A stretch of DNA of 63,372 bases, filler included, from Hyphochytrium catenoides (Eukaryota; Protista; Hyphochytriomycota): NCBI GenBank assembly GCA_900088475.1. It is 7 parts of 7 records of this genome, joined end to end, with 100 filler letters (N's around TTAATTAATTAA, not from the genome) between each part and the next. Parts side by side here need not be neighbours in the genome. Positions count along the whole stretch, not along the records: positions 18,034 to 41,429 come from FLMG01002234.1; 6 more parts are not named here. One strand, 5' to 3'. Below are positions 19,014 to 37,562 of the stretch, piece by piece (position 1 is the first letter of the stretch; every line of letters begins with the position of its first letter). Made by a program: the position numbers and the translations under genes. Below the pieces are notes generated by a model. The model did not search any database and was not told the DNA's origin. It was given only the letters and a program-made list of their open reading frames with translations.

Positions 19014-20318
19014 GAGAGAGAGAGAGAGAGAGAGGAAGAAGAGAAGAGGATTGAGATCAATAAATCGTGGACACTGCTCTTCTTCCTAATTGTTATCTCT
19101 CCTCCTTCCACGAAGAGACTCTGTTGGCCCAGCAAATTTTGAGTCCTTGAAGCGTCAGCATTGCTCTCTTCCCTTCCTTGTCCCTTCTTCTCTGCGCAAG
19201 TGTTCTTTCCTCTATCTCCTCATATCGCTGGCTGCAGGTGATGGAAAGGGATACCCTAGAGAAGCGAAGTCACTCCAGTCCAGCCTTCTCTTTTCCAGCA
19301 GATTTTAGGCACATTATCAGGCTTCTTCTCTCTCTCCAGAACGCTTCTCTCTCTCTCTTGCCGCATCCCCTTACCGACACCGCAACGTCTCTTCTCTCTT
19401 CCGCTTTCTCCCGCTTACGCCCGCCTTATTGTCTCGCTTACAGGCTACTCGCGATTCTCTCCTCCTGCCTGCTGATAATGGCAGCTTTCTTTCTCCCGCC
19501 CCGCGATTTAATATCTCTGGACGTCTTTCAAGGTATGATCCTTCTCCTGCTTGCTGTCTTCTCTCTTCAGAAATACTATCCTCTTTCTCTATACTGTTTA
19601 TCCGCCTTTCTCTCTCTTCTTGTTGCAGGTCCCTCTCTCCATTTCTTCTCTTCTTCTGACCTTACTTGTTGCTAAACCCAGCTCGAGTAGTAGTAGTTCG
19701 GTGGGATTGTTGGTTGCTCGACCAGCAGCTGCTGGGTCTCTCTTTCTCTCTCATCACACACACACACACTGTCTTCACTCCCCGCTGTTGGCCAGATTGC
19801 TGTTTCTCTCTCGCCATATTCTCTCTCTCTCTCTCCCTTGTTCTCCCTTTTCTCCTTCCAAGAAGAGAGCCAATCGCTCTCTTTCTCCTTCTCGTCCCTC
19901 TTGTCTATTGTGCTTGCGATACCACTGACTCTCTCCCTCCTTCCGCAACTCTTTCGTAACCATGAGGACCTCTATGTGGTGTCATGGTGGGCGGTAAACC
20001 AATACGCTTTTCCTCGTCTTGTCTGTCTAGCTGTGAACTGTCTCAATCCCTTTTTTTTGGCTCTCCTTCTTTCTCTCTCNNNNNNNNNNNNNNNNNNNNN
20101 NNNNNNNNNNNNNNNNNNNNNNNNNNNNNNNNNNNNNNNNNNNNNNNNNNCTCTCTCTGACCCTCTCCCTCGAAGGTTAAGAAGCTTTGTCTCACTTGGC
20201 TAAACTCCAGGGGAAGAACTGAAACGTCCGTTACATGAGGTGGGAGATGGGTTTGGGAACCGTTTCAGGAGAGGCAGAGGAGGGAGAAGGAGGAGGATCG
20301 ATCTCCTCCCCCAAGTCT

Positions 20319-21967: not shown

Positions 21968-22975
21968 TTAAGCTTTCCACTTGGCGATGTACTCGTTGAC
22001 GTTGACTCTCGTCTCTATGGACTTGTCGGACATCTTCTTGATGACAGGGTCCCACTCGACTTCTTTCTCAAAGCAGACGACAATGTCACTCCCGCCGTAC
22101 TCAAACCATCCGATCTCATCGCCTTTCTGCACCTCGTCTCCCTCCTTCACGAACATCTTCACTGTCCCAACACGCTCAGCGCCAATGGCGACAAACAGAA
22201 CGCGATAGCCTGGATCTCCATAGTAAGATCTGATGCAGACGATAGCTCTAGTGTTGTCCCCTAGCACGTTGATATCACTAGACAGAGCTTGCGGCTTGAC
22301 AGTGAAATACTCGCCAGAGATATGATAGACCTCCTCAACCCGACCACGGACAGGGCTATGAAAACGGTGATAGTCCATTGGAGAGAGTCTAAAGTTGGCG
22401 GTAGGAGAAGACTTGGCAAAGATTGAGAAAAGAGTGTCTCTCTTCTTGGCGTCTCTATCGGAGAGAGGTACCGAGAAGCCTAACAGAGACTCCATCGTAA
22501 AGTGCTTTCCCTTGATAAACAGAGTCTTCGCGTCTGAGAAGCTGCTGAACACTGTCAGTCTGCAGTCTGCGCAACTGGTAATGACTCTATCATCTTGCGG
22601 AGAAGCCACAGGTCTCTTCTCTTTCTTCACTTCTCTTATGAAGAAGTCATTGAACGTCTTAAAAAGATGCGGGTTCTCCTGAACGAAGTCTTCCATGCTA
22701 ATCCCATAGAAATCTACAAAGGCTGGAACCTCTTGCGCGCTGGCGTAGGTATTATGACTGTGCTTGCTATCAATGCTCTCACTCTTCAGCAGACGGCGGA
22801 TGAGGCCCCATCGGTCCATAAGATCTAAGGGCCAAGAGTACATAACGAGGTCTTCAATCCAGATGGAGAGAGGCATCTTTTCTTTCGTGAAAGTGTCCTT
22901 GTGCCTGTCATAAATCGTGGGCCCTAGCTCACGAGATCTTAGGGCGTGGACTTTGTCTAGGACCCAGCTCGTCAT
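21968..22975 (-). CDS. PSD: Phosphatidylserine decarboxylase proenzyme, Psd2-type short form (about 335 aa)
   Basis: Motifs FKTFNDFFIR, ADCRL (catalytic Asp), FRLSPMDYHRFHSP (catalytic His), FEYGGS (pyruvoyl-forming cleavage Ser). Uninterrupted ORF. A possible acceptor (cctcag) just upstream of ATG 22975 could add a 5' exon. Confidence 0.93.
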   Translation of the reverse strand: MTSWVLDKVHALRSRELGPTIYDRHKDTFTKEKMPLSIWIEDLVMYSWPLDLMDRWGLIRRLLKSESIDSKHSHNTYASAQEVPAFVDFYGISMEDFVQENPHLFKTFNDFFIREVKKEKRPVASPQDDRVITSCADCRLTVFSSFSDAKTLFIKGKHFTMESLLGFSVPLSDRDAKKRDTLFSIFAKSSPTANFRLSPMDYHRFHSPVRGRVEEVYHISGEYFTVKPQALSSDINVLGDNTRAIVCIRSYYGDPGYRVLFVAIGAERVGTVKMFVKEGDEVQKGDEIGWFEYGGSDIVVCFEKEVEWDPVIKKMSDKSIETRVNVNEYIAKWKA

Positions 22976-23863
22976 GATAGTACAAGCAGGTGCTGAGGCA
23001 GGGAGAAGGTCAGAAAGGAAAAGACAACTCAAGAGAGAGAGAGAGCAAGAGCGAGAAAGGAGAGCGAAGAAAGGGTCAACTGGCTCTGTTAGAGATGAAT
23101 GCGCCGCGTCTGGCTTTTCTTATGGTTCTTTCTTCCTTTTAGACTATGGCAGCAAGCCTTGGACACACTACTCCCTAGTTTGCTGCTTCTGTTTGCTGGT
23201 CGTCGCCTGTTCGCGGCACTGCAAATTGCATTGTGAGCAAGAGAATCAGTGCCCACCTCTCTTGCTTATTCTCTTTTACCTCCTCCTCTCTGCGGGCATC
23301 CTAAGAGAGAGGGAGGAAGAAACGTGCCGATGGAACAACAGGAAAGGCAGGTGCTCTTTCACTCATCTCCTTCCCTGTGGATCAGAATTGAGAGAAAAGA
23401 TAGGCCAAGCTCTGGTCGAAGCGTTTCCCTCTCGAACCCTTCCCTGCAGGGAAGGAGCACCTGCAGTGGCGGTGGATTCTCTCCATCCTCGCCATCTGTT
23501 CAGAGCTTGTTGAGCTCCTTCCTCTCTTCTCCTACCTGATAGCGGTGCCTGGATGGTTCTTCTCTTGGGTTTTTGGTTCCTTGTCTGTCCTCTCTGTCCT
23601 GCCAGCAGCAGCTTCCTGTTCGCTCTTCGCTTCGCTCATCTATTCTCCAGTTCTATTCTCTCTCCTCTCTCTTTCCTCTCTGTCTCTCTCTCCCTTTCTC
23701 TATCTTTCTCTCCCGCCTTTCTTACGCTCCTTTCTTTCTTTCTCTCTTGTTCTCTATCTCTCTCCGTCCCTCTCCTCTCTAATCACCGGCTTTTCTCTTT
23801 CCTGTCTCTCTCTCTTTTTATTTCTCTCTCTCTTTCTCTCTCTCTCCATCTCTCTCTCTCTCT

Positions 23864-23896
<33 letters not shown>

Positions 23897-24862
23897 CTTT
23901 CTCTCTGTCCTTTCTCTCTCTCTCTTTCTCCTTTCCCTCCCTCACTTTCTCTCTTTCTCACTCTCTCTTTCTCTCTCTCTCTCTCTTCCTCTCTCTCTCC
24001 AAAGATCCCCGCAACATCTGTTCAGACCAAAGATCCATCAACAGAAGCGAACAATGCGAATTTCCTAGGACAACCGTAGTAATATCCCCCCAAGTAGCAT
24101 ATTGTACATACCTAACAGCCGTACTACAGAAGTGATAATGCCAACTGCCCCTACTAAACAATGCGAGAACAGGACAGGACAAGTGTACAAAAGCTGATAA
24201 AAACACAACAGGCCCACCCAGCCCTAAAGTTGTAGTAAAAGCGCCAGCCCCAATTTTCGCCCACCCACACCTTTAAAACTAAAGATCTAATGAGGACCAC
24301 AATAAATCAATTGGTTAGGTTATCGTAGAGGATGACCGAGTCTGATCGATTTTCTAACGAAACGACACAGCAATAAGGTTCCTAAACACCGTTATGTCTC
24401 GTCCAGCATAGACTATTTCTGGTTTATTCTATCTAGATCTGGCGATTATGGTAGAGAAATGAAGCGAAATGGTTATTAGGATTTCAGAAGGGCCATGTCA
24501 ACGGCGGGCTCCGGAGGTTCGGGCGCCAGCCGAAGNNNNNAGAGAGGCACACTGTCACAGAGGGAGGAGAAGTAGAGCCCACAGGCTTAGATCTCTGACT
24601 CCTGCGCTGACAGTGGATGAATGAAGCTTTAGCCTGAGTCAAGACCAGTTGTTCAAGGACGTTATCCGCGCTGCAATCCACGTAGCACGGCCCTTCTCTT
24701 ACCTTGCTTAGCCTGCATCCTGCTCCTCATTAGGGCGGCCGGTCAACGCGCCATTATCTAACCCTTGGTGGAAGCTCCAAGTGCCGCCAGGGTGCTCCGT
24801 AGGCTCACGTAACTTGCCTTGGACTTGGATAACAGCTAGGAGCAGAAGGTCTTGGTCCAAAG

Positions 24863-27800
24863 ATGGCAGGCCCATCCCTCGAGGAGGTTCTTCTGAAGAG
24901 AAAGCTGACCATCGACACAAGCAGTGGACAAACTGTGCCTCCTGAAGCTGAGGAGAGAGAGTCACGAGATGTTGGCAGAATGGAAGAGCCCAAGAAAGAA
25001 GACTCTCTGTTAGCTCGGAGAAAGATTGACGAACTCCTAGAAGAGAACCATCGCTTTCTCTTCCGCCTCATGGTACGGTGACTAGACTGAGGAAAGTGTC
25101 GGTGACCTCTATCGTTGATGACGTTCCTCTCACTATGAAAACACTCTCTCCCTCTCTCTCTCTCTCTGTGTGTCGCCACTTTACTCTCAGGAATTCGGAG
25201 CGGAGACCAAGCACCAAGCTCTCCGCGTTGCTTTTGATCTCTACGAGATAACCACGCGGAACCCCATGAACTCGCACATCATCCAGGTTAGTTGGAAAGG
25301 TGACCATCGACCTTTCTCTCATGTCTGCTGCTGAACTGTCTGTTTCTCTCTTGACTACAATTAGCACCCGGGGCCTTTCTCCCTGTTGGTCTTTCCTCAT
25401 TTATATCTTCAATTTGATCTCTCTCACTGCAATATTGTTAGGCTTATATGTGACTTCTAGGTCCATTTCTCTCTCATCGCGCCACACGTGCTCTCTTTCA
25501 TGGCTTGCGGTCTCTCTCTTCCCCTCTCTCTATCTCTCTTCTTATTACTCTCTCTCCTCTCTCCCTCTCTCTTCCTGTCTCGCCTGTCTTCTCTTCTCTC
25601 CCTTTTCTCACTACCGCTCTCTGCTTCGCTCTTTCTCTCGCCCTCTTCCCTCTCTCGCTCTATCCGTTACTGACTGTCCACTCAGTCTATCTTCCTACTC
25701 GCAACATAAAAAACTTTCATTGAAACATAAAAAGTCTCTTGCTTCTCGTCATCATCACTCTTCCGATCCGCGTCACCTTGAAACCCTCACCAAGCACTAA
25801 GCATTGTCTCTCTTTGTGATGCTTTCTCCTTATTTCTCCTCCCATTTTCTCACCAATTTCTCTCTCCGCGGCTTGCCTTCTCTGTCTCTTCATGTCTTAG
25901 GTGAAGCTTCGCAGAGTCCGCCGCTTTTTACGCAAGCTTATGGCCTCGATAGCGAAAGCTGCGCCAAAGCCTAAGAGAAGAACAGCAGGAGCAGAGAACG
26001 ATGTATGACTTGATGCGGCTTTATTGTTTCCATTCTCTCTCGTTGAGGTCTTCAGATGTATCCCTAAACCGCGGATATCACTCATTTTATTCATGCCCAT
26101 CGGCGTCCTTAGTCGCCCTGATTCTTCACCTCTGACCATAGCGCTTATTTGCTCTTTCTTCCGCTCTTTCTTCTCCCGCCTTCGTCCCTTCCGCTTTGTG
26201 TTGAACGCCATCTTTCTGTCATTTGAAATCCCTCTCATGTCGGAAGATTCCTCTCTCTTCGTTCTATCTTCTCCCGTGTAAATATCTCTCCCAGACCTCC
26301 GCCGCACATGCTCTTCCTTCAAGAGTCTCAGTCCCCCCGAGTTCTTGACTCATTCTTGCCCCTCTCTTTCCCTTCCTCTTGCTTCTCTCATTCGTCTCTC
26401 TGTCTTCTCTCGTTCCTTTCGTCTCCGGCACGGTCCCTCTCTCTCTTTATTTGTTTGCGTCTTCGGTCTCGCTCTCTCAAACCTATTTCCCGTCTCTCTC
26501 CCGCCGCTTCTAACCCCTGTACAGGGCCTGACAACTATCACTAAGATTCACTTTTTGGAGACCGAGCTGGCGCGACTAAGAGAGGAAATGGCAATGTTAG
26601 CCAAGCTCAACCCTGCACTACATGCACGTTCCAGCAGCACTCAGGTGCCCGGAGCCAGGACTGAAGAGCCCAGACCACAGCGAGAACCGGAAGAGGAGGA
26701 AGGTGAACAAGAAGAAGAGAGAGAAGAAAGTCACTTTCATGAGGAGCATCAGGAAGAAAACGACTATGAGAACCAGGAATCTGAAGAAGAGAGCTATCCC
26801 GTCAACCAGCGTGGCCCTGTAGCGATGTGGGGCCCCGTAGCGGACGCAGGAGGACGAGTAGGGCAAGACCCTCGCCCTAGAAATGGCCTCAGAGTGACTC
26901 TCATTGAGACACAAGAGCTGGATGGAGAGGGCGGAGCTGATCAGTGGCTGCATCACATGGAGACGATGGGCTATGAACTGGAGAAGAGATTCCTTCTGGA
27001 AGGGAGACAGAGCGAAGAGGGAGGAGCGACACTCACAGACCAAATCCTTAGTGGAGGTGCTAAGAGGTTGCGAAAGACAGAGACTCCAAGGTGACAATTT
27101 GCTTTCTTCTTTTTGTTTCTCTTTTTCCCGTTGAACCCCAAAGGCATATCCGTTGTCTCTATCATTGTACCGCGTTATCTGCACCCTCTGTCCTCCTAGT
27201 CTTTTGCTTGACAGAGCTTTATTTCCGTCTCTCTCTCTGCCTTCTCTCTCTCTCTCTCTCGGTTTGGCACTCACTACCGGCACTGTGGATCAGGTCTCCG
27301 GGTGGCACTCCTCTGAAGATGCAAAGGCAGTCATCAAGCGGTAATGCTGTGGGCTCTCTTCTGCACCAAGCCCTGGGGGATAAGTTCAAGAATGCCAGAG
27401 GGTAAGGACCACCCGATCTTCATCTCTTCTCTTCTATTCTCTCCTCTGTCTCTATTGACAAATTTAGGGCCACGCGTCCCACCTTCGAAGCTACGTCCTT
27501 TTTCCTTTTCTCACATTCTTCAAGTCTGACTCTTCCTACTGATCGTCTCTATTGGCTTCGCCTCTTCTTTCTGCCTCTCTCTTTTGTAAGCCTCCGTATT
27601 CCTCTACTGGCTCTGTCTGTTCTCCTCACATTCTATCTCTCTTCCCTACCTCAATCCGCTAAGCTGAACTGTTGATCCTGATAGACCGAACAGTGGCTCC
27701 ACTACTGACAGCGAAGATGACACTTATGATGAGGAAGAGTGGATGGAAGGCCAGCGGAACAGTTCGCAGGTATGACCGTCGAGGAAAATTGGTTCCCACT

Positions 27801-27980
27801 TGTAAGGAGCTGACCGGATCTTCTTTCCTCTCTCTCTTTCACTGTCTCTCTCACTCTGTCTCTCTATCTTTGCTCCGCTTATGTCTCTCTCTCACGTTCA
27901 ACTATCAGAGGACCATCCTTAACGACCAGCTCCTGTCCGCAATAAGAGCAAGAGAAGCTAGAGGCATTGGAACCAAGTAA
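24863..27980 (+). CDS. MTFR1/PRR11-like protein with C-terminal WH2-central-acidic (WCA-like) module and an extra WH2-like helix, about 412 aa
   Basis: Exons 24863-25072, 25191-25286, 25901-26002, 26525-27090, 27294-27401, 27685-27769, 27909-27980 (phase-consistent; optional 30-nt exon near 26295). Motifs KIHFLETELARLREEMAML; LTDQILSGGAKRLRKT; RSPGGTP; GNAVGSLLHQALGDKF; DSEDDTYDEEEW; NDQLLSAIRAR. Confidence 0.8.
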
Positions 27981-28349
27981 GGCAGAGCTACCTTCCGTTC
28001 CAATAAGAAAGCTGCTCTATTTTCCTCTTCCATATCTTGACTCCCTCCAAGCACTCCTTTTCCTCTTCTTCCCTTCCCTCCTCTTGCTGTCTCTTTCCTC
28101 CGTTCTTGCCGCCGTGTCTCTCCTCCTCAAGCCACGGTCACTACTGACTTCTTTCCCTTGCTAACTGCAGAACAGGCTAGGCCAGTGAATGTGAGAGAGA
28201 GAAAGGCACTCAGGGAGCAGAGAGATCTGGACAGGATCTATAAACGCCAGAATATCCGTCCGCTAGAAAATATCCAAGAGTAAATGTCCGTGGCAGTCCA
28301 TAAATAATGATAAATATAAAGGTTTAGGAACCCGACCCTGTGTGGAAGC

Positions 28350-29510
28350 TCAGTCACTCTCTGATGTCGAGTCACTCTCCTTCTCTCTACGTCTCTTCTT
28401 CTTTCTCTTCCTCTCCTTGTCTTTGGGCTTCTTCTTCTTTTCCTTCTTCTTCTTCGCTTTATCTTTCTTGAGAGTCTTTCGCTTTTCTTGAGCTTCTTCA
28501 CCTTCGTCGTCTGTCACGGTGACTTCTATTATGGACTCTCTCTCTCTTTCGAGAGAGGCTGTTGCCATCATCTTTGCTTTTCTCTCAGCCCAGAAGTTCC
28601 TCTGCTCCGCTGGATCCTGAGATTTTCTGGAACTTGGCCTGCTCGCATTGTCTTCGACTGTGTACTGCTGACTGTACGGCTTCTGTAGGACTCGTTCCTC
28701 TCTAGCTCTGTCTTCTTCTCTTTCCAATGTACTCATATGCTTTTCCCTGCGAGCTTCTCGCCTGTCGTTATCTTCGCGTCTCTTTCTATCTCGGCTCCGG
28801 CTTCTCCGTCTCTCGCTGCTGCGAGACCTTTCTCTATTTCTGCTTCGGCTTCTCCTTTTCTCTCCGCTACGGCTGGTACGTGCTTCATGGCTTCCCTTTA
28901 AGTCTCTACTTCTCGAACGTGGTCTCTCTCCGCTTCTCCCTCTCTTTCTCCCTCGGCTAAATGTTTCGCTCTCTATAGCTCGTTGTTTCCAGCAAAGAGC
29001 TTCTTCTTGCCTTCTGTTATGGCCCGACACACTGGACGGGCGAGCAGGACAGAAGAAAAATGATGTCGGGAAACGAAAAGAAGAGACAACAGCGCATTCA
29101 GCTATCCGCCTACCTTTGGATGGTGGAGGCGAGATATTGCTTGTTAATCTCTAGAGAGGGTTTGGAAGGAGGAGCGCGTCCCTACAGGCAAGCTAAGTGG
29201 TAAGCCGGACTGAATAAAATAGAGCAATCAAGAGATAGAGTAAGGAAAGGATAAAGAGAAATGAAGGGTCAGTGATATTTTCTTCAGCAAGGCGTACCAA
29301 GTATCCAGTGACTCCCAGCTGCTCCACCTTCTCCTTGCGCTTCTTTACCTAGAGCCATGCAAGAGACGGACAAGAAGGGTTATGGGTTGATCGCGTTCTG
29401 GACCTTAGGGAAAGGGATCCCACCTCATCTCTAATAAGTGAAGCCACATAGTCATCGTCAAACTCGACGCGGGGCATAGCCTTGACAAGTGCTTCCACCT
29501 TCTTCTCCAT
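28350..29510 (-). CDS. RS/Lys-rich putative nuclear protein with a conserved-looking N-terminal domain, 4 exons
   Basis: Exons 29510-29424, 29348-29298, 29181-29114, 29031-28350, phase-consistent. N-term DDDYVASLI...LGVTGYL...INKQYLASTIQSVSGHNR; RSRSR repeats; poly-Lys tail. Confidence 0.82.
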
Positions 29511-29752: not shown

Positions 29753-30883
29753 GGGGAGTCTTTCCCCACATAAAACTTCTTCCTCTGGCAATATCGAGCT
29801 CTTTGAAGATTTATTTATGAAGATTATCGCCTGATCAAATGAAGATTTTGTCTGCCAAGATCTGCATTGCTGCGATTCCTACTCCTGGGGGGTGTTCATA
29901 ACGGACACCTGAGATTTGGCCATAGGTTCAATGCTGCAGAACAGAAACAGAGAATGTGAGTGTCTCCCTCTCAAATTGACGCAATCATCCTTTCTTTGAC
30001 TCATAAACGCCGAATTATTGTGAATTCTAACTCTAAACTATATTAACATTACCGTAACAGTTATACTTTAAATAACAAAGGCCTCAGTATCAAGTTCTCT
30101 TGACCCATAAATAGCCGCATTATAGACTAAGAGTGAGAAAGCGACAATCCTGGTCCGTATAGTGCTGTACTTTGTTTGCTCCAACATTCACAAACCTGCT
30201 TTCTTCTATCAAGGATGTATCTCAGCTTTATCGTGAATCCTAATCGCCAAACATGCCGTTATCAGGTATTCTAAGCGGTGTTGAAGTGAGTTCTTTCTTG
30301 GTTTTGTTGTTGGCGCAACTTCGTGCAGCTCTCAATGTGCAGATCTGAAGCAGCAATGCAGCTTCTGCAGATGAGGTTGGCAGCTTTCTGAAAGCCACAG
30401 AGGCGCTAGATGGCGTCTGAGCCTGATAGCAAGGCACACGTAACAAGGCAGGGGTGGTGAGGGTTCATTGAGACCAGGCAGGTGAGAAGGGCAAGCTATA
30501 GCAATCAGAGATAGGAAGTTGAGCCACCACGGAGGGAGACAGTGTCGCTCGCAGAGCTTACTATCTAGTGAGCAATCTACCTTGTTCTTGCCAAGGTCCA
30601 GGGAATTTGTCGTTGTTCTAGGAGGCTACAGGTAATAGGACGTAGCTGAAGGCGTGCGCAACAGTTCCAGACGGTTTTCTCGGGAGCCTTTTTTGCCTCA
30701 TGCACGCGCCTTCGGTGAAGAAGTTCAGCAGCTGAGGGTCATACCTCGCTATGGCGAAGTTACTCAATGAGGAGAGACTGTCCTCCCTTCGGGAGCAGTG
30801 ACGGCGCCTGCTGCTAACGCTTTTCAAGGCTGTTGTCATCAACAAAAGAGTCTCAAGGTCAAGGTCTACTCAGACGCCGCAAG

Positions 30884-33213
30884 ATGAAAGACGAGGAGCT
30901 CCTAAGAGGAGTTTTGGAGAGCACTGCCCTCAAGCGTCAGCGGTCGATATCGCTCCGGGATCGGGAGGAATATCCCCGCGCTAGGGACATTCACTTCCTT
31001 GATGATCAGCACTACATTAGAAGAAGGCACTATGACCACCTCCGAGGGAATGAAAGTGGTTCCCCCGGGCGCTTCTTCCGGTCGCAGTTTCCTTTCTCGA
31101 GGAGAAGAGACTCCTCTGTCCTCTCCCTCGCCTCTCCATCTCCTGTTTCCTCTGATGTCCTTAGCAGAGATTCGGACATCAGCCTGGGCTCTCAGGGGAC
31201 AGCAGAGTTTATGGAATGCATCAATGAAGATGCGTCCACCCTCTCTGCCGATGAAGGTAGAGATTCTCTCATCAAGAACATGCTGCATTTGGCTCATGAG
31301 CTGAAGGTCCAGGGCATTCTCAGCCCTGAGCAGCAAGGCATTTTGAAGGATAGTATTTTAAAGAACCCTCAGGTACGCCTGTTATCTCTATTAGATGTCT
31401 CTCTCTGCTACCTTTGCCTTCTCACTTGATAAGGCGTTTAAGTCCTATAGCAGGTCCTGCTGCCTTTGCTGTCTTCCAACTCTCTTCCATCATCCCTGTA
31501 TTTAGAGCTTGAGCCGTACTCACTCATTCAAGGCTCTGTTCATCTGTTCTTCTCTTTATTTGGTCTCTCCTCCTCTCACGTCCTTTGTTGCTAACGTATG
31601 CCTTCTCCCTGTAGGAAGTAGCTCGGATAGAGCTTTCCGATACAAAGGCCCTCATCGCCTATCTAGAGTCTACACGGAGAGAGTCAACGGAACTGGCAAC
31701 ACCCTCTCTTTCACTGTCAGGAGACACTCCGGCCGCATCTCTGGGAACAGAACGCTCCTCGTCCTCCTCATCCTCCTCCTTTCGCCCTTCTTCCCTTCTG
31801 AGTAGCTCAAGAGTCAAGAGCCTCTCTCATGATATCCACTCCTCCATAGATCTGAGGATGTTAGAGACGCCTCGGACGCCCAGAATGGCCAGAGACATGA
31901 GAAGCATCTCTGAGCCTTCGTCAGCTGGCGCCGCCATCTCCGACGAGGTCCTTTATAACGGAATAACCGTTCGCATCGTGGACACCAGCGTCAGTAAGTC
32001 TGTCACACATTATAACATCCGCGTGGAAGACCATGCCACGGGTTATCGATGGATAGTTAGCAAGAGATTCAGAGACTTCTTCTTCTTCTACCATCAGCTC
32101 TCCAGCATCTCCTACCGCTATCCCAATGGCAAGCCCTTTGGTGGCACAATGTCCTGGCTCGGCACACAGCAGTTTCCCAGGCGAAGATTAAGAGGTTCTT
32201 CCCGGGCCGTAGTGGTAGAAGAGAGAAAGAAGCTTCTCGACGCCTTTCTTCGGCATACCTCAGCCCTGGTACTGCCACAACCTATTGGGCATACACGGAA
32301 AAGAGCCCTCTTGGCCCTGCAGGACTTCCTCCGCGTCCCACCTAGTCTGATAGAGAGAAGCAACGAAATAGAAGGAAGACTACATGGCCATGTGGACGCT
32401 TTGGAACGTACGCGATCGTATGAACGTGCGCAGAGCATTGTCCGCAGAGTCCTTACCTCCTGTGATACGACGCTGTATCATAAGGTGCAGCAATGTATCA
32501 GGCAGTTCAAGAAAGAGACGTACACTCTTCTGAACTCGAAGGACAGCCTAGGACAGAGTGGAGAACTGCAGGTGATAGATGTGGACGGGGTGGAGAGCTT
32601 GAAAGACTTAGCGAAAAGGATAAGCGCAGTGACGGACGCCTTCCTCTCTCTCCCAGAGATCAGCAAAGAGCTCTCTCCTGATTCCTCATCCCCGATCAAC
32701 GCGGACGATGACGCTTACCTCGCCATACAGTGCACCGTAGAAGAGTACTTCTTTCTACCTCTAGAGGAAGAGATAACGGAGATGCTCCGGACGGTCGTGA
32801 GCCCAGAGGAAGATACAAAGCTCAGACTACGCCTGAAAGAGCTTCAAAGCCAGTCACAGAGTGACTTTGGCATTCCTCCGCACCTTCAGTCAGCGGACGA
32901 TTTTGAGAGAACGAGAAAGATCCTGAGGCAGATGGATCGCTACTCTCTCCCTTCTGCTAAGCTTCAGTGCTTAGTAGAGGCAGCTAGGTCGGTGGCAGAG
33001 GCCCATTCTTCCGCAGGAAGACTGGGTGCGGACGACTATCTTCCTATCCACATCTTCTCCATCGCGACCTGCAATATATCTGAGCCTCTGAAGACTTTGC
33101 AGCTGATCACCTCCATGTGCCCGCCAAGACAGAGAACAGGGCAAAGAGGCTATTTTTTGACGATGTTTCAGGGCGCTCTTTCCTTCTTAGACCAAAAAGA
33201 CGGCGCAGCCTGA
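30884..33213 (+). CDS. PX domain + VPS9 domain protein (putative Rab5-family GEF); start uncertain (30751 or 30884)
   Basis: Exon to 31372|gt, ag|31615-33213 in frame. PX: THYNIRV...WIVSKRFRDF...FPRRRL...EERKKLLDAFL...LQDFL. VPS9: PSAKLQCL...LGADDYLP...GQRGYFLT. Confidence 0.88.
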
Positions 33214-37215: not shown

Positions 37216-37521
37216 AGAGGAAGAAACGAAGTCCGTGGAACTGTCGAGACGTCCCAAAGTCTAGCCAATTGGGAAAAGAGAGAGAGAATGATGGAGAGGG
37301 AGAGGAACTGAAGGAAGTCAACCGGATGAGGAAGAGATTGCAGAAAGATTGGTAGAGAAAAATGGGGAACTAGAAGGGAAGAGGAGAGAGACTTTGAAGG
37401 ACGCAGAAAGTTAGAGGAGGAGGCCCAAGGAGGAGGAGAGCAGGAGAGGGAGAAAAGGAGAGAAGAGGAAAGAGGAACAGAAACTGATTGAGAGGCCGGC
37501 GAAAAAGAGAGAGACAGAGAC

Positions 37522-37562
<41 letters not shown>

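Follow-up and report, generated by a model that had tools for sequence, protein, structure and literature searches.

Within the WASP family, any VCA protein whose N-terminus differs is counted as a new subfamily, and lineage-specific subfamilies, among them WAWH and WAML, exist notably in amoebae; all described members of the family possess a proline-rich region (Kollmar et al. 2012, PMC3298513). In WASP and N-WASP, the VCA module starts with a WH2 helix and its LKKT-like motif, followed by some 20 residues of Pro/Ser/Thr-rich linker, an amphipathic helix, and an acidic tract with aromatic residues and Trp. Here we describe a gene of Hyphochytrium catenoides (assembly GCA_900088475.1) whose predicted 412-residue product carries such elements in the same order. 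It occupies positions 24863-27980 on the plus strand of the window, by which we mean the whole stretch of 63,372 nucleotides (nt) that was analysed, and lies in the part taken from FLMG01002234.1 (18034-41429). We tentatively interpret the product as a lineage-restricted candidate nucleation-promoting factor which combines a new N-terminus and a coiled coil with a W-C-A-like tail (WH2-like, C-like and acidic elements) and a duplicate helix, and we give this reading, which is drawn from sequence, a probability of roughly 0.4. Actin binding, Arp2/3 binding, activation and regulation are what we infer from a gene model and from ordered motifs that were established in silico.

The likeness to N-WASP extends to the start of the helix in exon 5, where VGxL[LM] resembles IVGALMEVM (PMC6624021). 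The protein differs from WASP and N-WASP in that it lacks WH1, the basic region, GBD and polyproline, has no KR doublet after the C helix, and continues for about 30 extra residues, including a second helix, beyond the Trp. Pfam scans of exons 1-4, made one exon at a time and so with reduced sensitivity, returned none of WH1, WHD/SHD, WAHD1, WMD, GBD and IMD at E<=10, and exons 1, 2 and 3 scanned singly matched no family at this threshold. These scans, together with a count of Pro runs, bear out the first-pass annotation of this DNA, in which WH1, WHD/SHD, WASH-homology and polyproline regions were said to be missing and the N-terminus was described as unrecognised and helical. Unlike the situation in WAVE/SCAR and WASH, no WHD/SHD or WAHD1 was detected in exons 1-3. 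WAWH and WAML are protist precedents for a VCA with a non-standard N-terminus, and in WAWH type II a coiled coil is also located upstream of VCA; however, the defining domain is a GBD in WAWH, to which type II adds CxxC motifs and a proline-rich region, and an IMD in WAML (PMC3298513), whereas the whole protein described here is devoid of Cys and has neither a proline-rich region nor a GBD or IMD match. As no N-terminal domain of any subfamily and no proline-rich region were found, the protein cannot be assigned to any of the six described WASP subfamilies.

Gene model

The gene comprises seven exons separated by introns that are all of the GT..AG type, and the joined frame of 412 codons ends at a TAA stop (27978-27980). 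Splice phases are compatible across all seven exons and required no adjustment (Table 1). The C-terminal 110 residues of the spliced tail quoted in the first-pass annotation are reproduced exactly by this frame. We regard the seven-exon model as confirmed in silico: it has the appearance of a real spliced gene, with junctions that are predicted.

The pyrimidine fraction of the sense strand is 0.36-0.51 in exons as against 0.62-0.73 in introns, with steps that coincide with the predicted junctions. In the short 3' exons 5, 6 and 7 it is 0.46, 0.36 and 0.41, respectively, compared to 0.68-0.72 in the flanking introns. These composition steps are more telling than the codon-usage score, which was trained on two long neighbouring open reading frames (ORFs), those of a phosphatidylserine decarboxylase (PSD) and of a PX+VPS9 protein. 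By codon score, the model frame is the best of three in six of the seven exons, with exon 3 a tie near zero, and all six introns score <=0 in every frame; exons 5 and 7 score just above zero, with the model frame still the best of three.

Sequence variation was assessed in contigs from a DNA run of the same organism (run X1), and the counts given here refer to the differences listed. Most of these differences fall in introns. The variant contig that covers intron 5 (27406-27705) has about 20 substitutions and 7 gaps in 300 nt, all of them within 27436-27673, and exon 6 is free of substitutions over its first 21 nt. Exon differences consist of two synonymous changes (exon 3, at 25948 and 25963), one Tyr-to-Asn codon, and an indel in the Glu-rich tract which is in frame (net 3 nt). 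This pattern is suggestive only, and favours the gene model. The same DNA run contains two versions of the intron 5 contig, one identical to the window and one diverged, and these may be allelic or strain variants, or may reflect a diverged duplicate.

At the 3' end, a strong donor (AA|GTAAGG, 27976/27977) overlaps the stop codon, and a good acceptor preceded by branch-like sites (CTGAC/CTAAC) ends at 28170. If this intron (27976/27977 to 28170/28171) is used, the protein would end in ...GTKTG and not in ...GTK, which makes this a possible 3' intron or alternative end. An extra exon that would supply the terminal helix with an LKKT motif was considered and rejected, since this sole plausible intron adds only Thr-Gly before a stop. 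Upstream, no convincing coding exon was found within 23033-24862.

The C-terminal tail and its likeness to a VCA module

Most of the 412-residue protein appears to be disordered. AlphaFold2, run on the single sequence of exon 4, predicts with low confidence (mean pLDDT, the predicted local distance difference test, of 50) helices at exon residues 2-28, 137-158 and 170-180, and a helix of the WH2-like motif over residues 306-316 is likewise a low-confidence prediction. The tail has the order and spacing of W, C and A that the first-pass annotation had proposed, with 22 residues between the WH2-like motif and the amphipathic helix and 8 residues between the latter and the acidic tract.

The WH2 and C-domain patterns applied here are those of Kollmar et al. 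2012 (PMC3298513). The first copy of the WH2-like motif (residues 306-321) agrees with 8 of the 10 specified positions, and its LRKT correctly follows a linker, here of 6 residues as opposed to 4-5 in WASP/WAVE and 10 in WASH (Kollmar et al. 2012, PMC3298513). With the 77-residue tail as query, the Pfam WH2 profile (PF02205) matches at E=0.062 and 13.5 bits over QILSGGAKRLRKTETPRS, corresponding to profile positions 11-26 of 28, with an alignment that starts only at Gln309; the second WH2 of human N-WASP, used as a control (sequence from PMC6624021), reaches 31.7 bits. WH2 is the only biologically meaningful Pfam match on the tail. A match to Shadoo (E=0.014) was discarded as an artefact of Gly/Ala/Ser low complexity.

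The terminal helix in exon 7 is an internal repeat of the WH2-like helix, as both carry [TI]-L-[TN]-D-Q-[IL]-L-S. Within it, LLSAIR (residues 397-402) corresponds exactly to the six-residue helix of the WH2 pattern, with no L-[KR]-[KR]-[VTA] after it, and neither copy matches the strict form of that pattern. Of the trailing second WH2 on its own terminal exon that had been postulated, what stands is a duplicate helix behind the acidic Trp; the LKKT-like motif is missing. LLSAIR is also what we take to be the WH2 helix of WAVE, and DSEDD followed by an aromatic residue and Trp recalls what is presumably the acidic end of WAVE. In the same way, GGATL..I..GG.AK.LR and GIG.K recall a long-linker WH2 which we assume to be that of WASH.

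A C domain has large hydrophobic residues at i, i+4 and i+8, then a K/R doublet or triplet, and then a hydrophobic residue (Kollmar et al. 2012, PMC3298513). The helix of exon 5, with hydrophobic residues V344, L348, L352 and F356 at i, i+4 spacing, fits this rule in part: V344, L348 and L352 comply, K355, K357 and R360 supply basic residues that do not adjoin one another, and a Phe closes the series. The terminal helix fits about equally well (L393/L397/I401, R402/R404/R407 and I409), but is located past the acidic tract. Scanned alone, exons 5 and 7 had no match in Pfam or PDB. The claimed acidic tract with Trp is clearly present, 9 of its 14 residues being Asp or Glu in addition to Tyr375 and Trp380, and so are the TP/SP sites predicted for the linker between W and C, where three proline-directed sites occur.

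Residues 301-382 were aligned with the VCA of human N-WASP (PMC6624021), which gave a collinear local alignment through W, C and A with a score of 49. This score was reached in 2 of 5000 full shuffles and in 181 of 5000 shuffles within modules (P ~0.04). The whole protein was also shuffled 20,000 times with its composition preserved: 0.18% of the shuffles contained the relaxed WH2 pattern, 1% an acidic-Trp window, and none a relaxed WH2 followed within 80 residues by an acidic-Trp window, with patterns that had been set after viewing the sequence. Overall, the tail resembles a VCA in its architecture, at the level of motifs only, and the residue-level evidence is weak. Weak residue-level similarity is common for such short motifs.

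If the tail functions as its layout suggests, an actin monomer would be held by the WH2-like helix with LRKT. The barbed-end groove of Arp2 or Arp3 would receive the amphipathic helix of exon 5 and perhaps also the terminal helix, and the acidic Tyr/Trp tract would serve as the anchor on the Arp2/3 complex; a protein with all of these would be a class-I nucleation-promoting factor. Dimerisation, a state that raises the potency of nucleation-promoting factors, would come from the coiled coil, and the TP, SP and TPLK sites between W and C would be a likely regulatory switch.

Relatives and genomic surroundings

No homologue of exon 4 was found among 5.8 billion proteins, and none for the 249-residue ORF that contains it (scored over residues 61-249, E<=10). 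A phmmer search with exon 4 against 1.84 billion representatives returned nothing, MTFRs included, and neither exon 4 nor the 77-residue tail had a match among JGI metagenome contigs. Feature searches of the ESM Atlas with exon 4 and exon 1 gave scores <=0.84 to unrelated clusters. These empty searches say little about close relatives, because the protein collections do not include even this genome. Reads that are 95-99% identical occur in soil metagenomes; those of run X3 (2025; 26558-27207) match exon 4 and its boundary with intron 4 at about 95-97%. As such reads and 151-nt contigs from a run of another organism match exon 4, close relatives do exist in public read data and are absent from assembled collections.

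The studied gene is divergent from the intron-free gene for PSD, whose best relatives are metagenome proteins (49-56% identity), the best named ones being fungal (~40%). On one soil-metagenome contig (soilH1_10000449; JGI, L001, 122.8 kb), which is compact, apparently eukaryotic and intron-poor, a PSD gene is 53% identical to this neighbour. The contig shows no synteny with the window: the gene divergent from PSD on it is unrelated to the one studied here, and tblastn with the spliced protein gave only E ~7. The PX+VPS9 protein is probably a Rab5-type exchange factor, and in the ESM Atlas it comes closest (score 0.96) to a cluster made up mainly of oomycetes.

The part of the window from FLMG01002234.1 contains long CT/GA simple repeats with small N gaps beside them (near 20100, 24536-24540 and 36800). 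Introns and spacers are rich in pyrimidines (CT) on the sense strand (e.g. 25287-25900 and 26003-26524), with a median intron length of 243 nt, and the strand skew flips with gene orientation. Such introns, and gaps next to simple repeats, agree with what has been published on the genome of Physarum polycephalum (PMC4758236). For an amoebozoan, Arp2/3 and several WASP-family proteins would be expected.

Table 1. Exons, protein elements and neighbouring genes, with positions in the window and residues of the 412-residue protein.
Feature	Positions	Strand	Residues	Remarks
Exon 1	24863-25072	+	1-70	ATG start; donor GTACGG; codon score +14.3 bits vs -20 / -25 in other frames
Exon 2	25191-25286	+	71-102	acceptor CAG, donor GTTAGT, phase 0; codon score +6.8 bits
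Exon 3	25901-26002	+	103-136	basic helix VKLRRVRRFLRKLMASIAK; acceptor TAG, donor GTATGA; weakest exon, codon score ~0
Exon 4	26525-27090	+	137-325	coiled coil, long acidic tract, helix, WH2-like motif
Exon 5	27294-27401	+	325-361	108 nt; SPGGTPLK linker with TP/SP sites, then amphipathic helix
Exon 6	27685-27769	+	361-389	85 nt; acidic tract; codon score +6.3 bits vs -2.6 / -25 in other frames
Exon 7	27909-27980	+	390-412 and stop	72 nt; terminal helix
N-terminal region			1-136	exons 1-3; charged, helical-looking
Predicted coiled-coil helix LTTITKIHFLETELARLREEMAMLAKL	26528-26608	+	138-164	helix in AlphaFold2 prediction
Glu-rich low-complexity tract	26663-26794	+	183-226	upstream of WH2-like motif
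Further predicted helix			273-294	AlphaFold2
WH2-like motif LTDQILSGGAKRLRKT	27032-27079	+	306-321	
W-C linker ETPRSPGGTPLK			322-333	TP, SP and TPLK sites
Amphipathic C-like helix AVGSLLHQALGDKFKNAR	27346-27399	+	343-360	
Acidic tract DSEDDTYDEEEWME	27707-27748	+	369-382	Tyr375, Trp380 (27740-27742)
Terminal helix ILNDQLLSAIRAR	27915-27953	+	392-404	followed by EARGIGTK and stop
Phosphatidylserine decarboxylase (PSD)	21968-23032	-		intron-free; Pfam E=2.6e-47; divergent, ~1.8 kb upstream of the studied gene
226-residue ORF, Arg/Ser- and Lys/Glu-rich	28350-29030	-		convergent; stop ~370 nt from the studied TAA; no Pfam match
PX + VPS9 protein	31858-33213, perhaps with 30833-31429	+		Pfam
RCC1-like repeat gene, multi-exon	37370-39610	-		RCC1 repeats in three ORF fragments, split by GA-rich (sense CT-rich) introns

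Competing explanations and biological meaning

Several observations weigh against a nucleation-promoting factor. The WH2-like motif scores well under the Pfam cut-off (13.5 vs 23.1 bits), and its helix deviates at two positions of the strict pattern, with Thr307 at position 2 (hydrophobic) and Leu311 at position 6 (K/R/Q); the WH2 is a weak point of the full WCA tail claimed by the first-pass annotation. There is no proline-rich region, the longest Pro run being PP (residues 26-27) and Pro accounting for 5.1% of residues, and about 30 residues follow Trp380, which at 32 residues from the C-terminus, not at the end, is in an unusual place. Taken alone, W and C align with N-WASP without significance (score reached in 1535 of 5000 shuffles), a phmmer search of PDB chains with the WH2 piece, exons 4-7 and the 77-residue tail found no VCA or other relevant match at E<=10, and with no homologue in the databases searched, conservation of the motifs has no support. 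No exon junction has transcript support either: no splice joint was seen in the contigs that match the gene, whether from the DNA run of the same organism or from the other organism's run, guessed to be RNA, whose 151-nt contigs are 84-93% alike and fall inside exon 4 only. The weakness of formal similarity to true VCAs, the missing proline-rich region, the position of Trp380 and the lack of the basic doublet of the published rule in the candidate C helix would all be accommodated by a disordered scaffold that looks like a VCA and does not activate Arp2/3, with a WH2-like motif that binds an actin monomer or nothing and an acidic tract that serves another partner; coat and adaptor proteins are among the partners of acidic-aromatic motifs. 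We consider such a look-alike unlikely, as the order and spacing of the four elements are VCA-like and were not produced by shuffling, and the N-WASP alignment is collinear through W, C and A. It is likewise unlikely that the 3' gene model is wrong, the transcript ending after exon 4 or using other exons, so that the C-like and acidic pieces would be chance open frames. That the junctions are without RNA support, that exons 5-7 are short and that exons 5 and 7 have barely positive codon scores would fit this explanation, as would the consequence of retaining intron 4, namely an in-frame stop directly past exon 4 and a protein ending in ...LRKTETPR; because of this stop, the C-like helix and the acidic tract are part of the protein only if intron 4 is spliced. 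Against it stand the drop in pyrimidines in each of exons 5-7, a model frame that is the best of three in all of them, splice phases that fit unadjusted, substitutions in intron 5 that spare the start of exon 6, and encoded pieces which carry on the logic of a VCA.

The first-pass annotation had also linked the protein to MTFR and PRR11. According to this explanation, which we find improbable, the protein belongs, in divergent form, to the MTFR (Mito_fiss_reg)/PRR11 group, with the coiled coil, the WH2-like motif, RSPGGTP and ALxxKF as a family signature, and would have a role in organelle distribution with ARMC1 and MIRO rather than in general Arp2/3 activation; actin binding is compatible with it. 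Human MTFR1 presumably agrees with the list of motifs and has a collinear layout. Mito_fiss_reg (PF05308) is indeed the top Pfam match of exon 4, on the KIxxLExELAxLR helix (exon-4 residues 3-54, i.e. residues 139-190; profile positions 117-170 of 244), and PRR11 is reported to recruit Arp2/3 and to have two proline-rich regions, the second of which is needed for its Arp2/3-linked effect (PMC8720695). However, this likeness to MTFR1, MTFR2 and MTFR1L is marginal (E=0.51, 10.9 bits vs a cut-off of 26.3), was obtained with one of seven queries and is confined to the coiled coil, and as it is below threshold the protein cannot be placed in the MTFR family. The tail, which holds RSPGGTP and ALGDKF, has no Mito_fiss_reg match at E<=10, the proline-rich regions that characterise PRR11 are absent from the 412-residue protein, and the phmmer search with exon 4 described above was empty. 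In the literature, we found no paper joining MTFR1 with a WH2 domain and nothing relevant for the motif strings. MTFRs have been described in animals as mitochondrial proteins bound to ARMC1 and MIRO (PMC11980836), and the genome studied here is protist-like, not animal. We therefore do not uphold the link. It is highly improbable that an undescribed subfamily of functional Arp2/3 activators is represented here, with a new helical N-terminus, no proline-rich region and a W-C-A trailed by a second WH2/C-like helix, and that the protein is also a true homologue of animal MTFR/PRR11, the latter being degenerate descendants of a VCA-type nucleation-promoting factor.

If demonstrated, a link to MTFR/PRR11 would provide a mechanistic lead for animal proteins about which little is understood, but the evidence at hand gives it no support. 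For the lineage-restricted nucleation-promoting factor that we favour, the meaning is a different one. Should its tail activate Arp2/3, the protein would be another lineage-specific factor, one that manages without a proline-rich region or known targeting domains, and it would show that the VCA module is freely recombined in protists. The protein would, moreover, be a natural test case for a contribution of a helix past the acidic Trp to the binding of Arp2/3 or actin.

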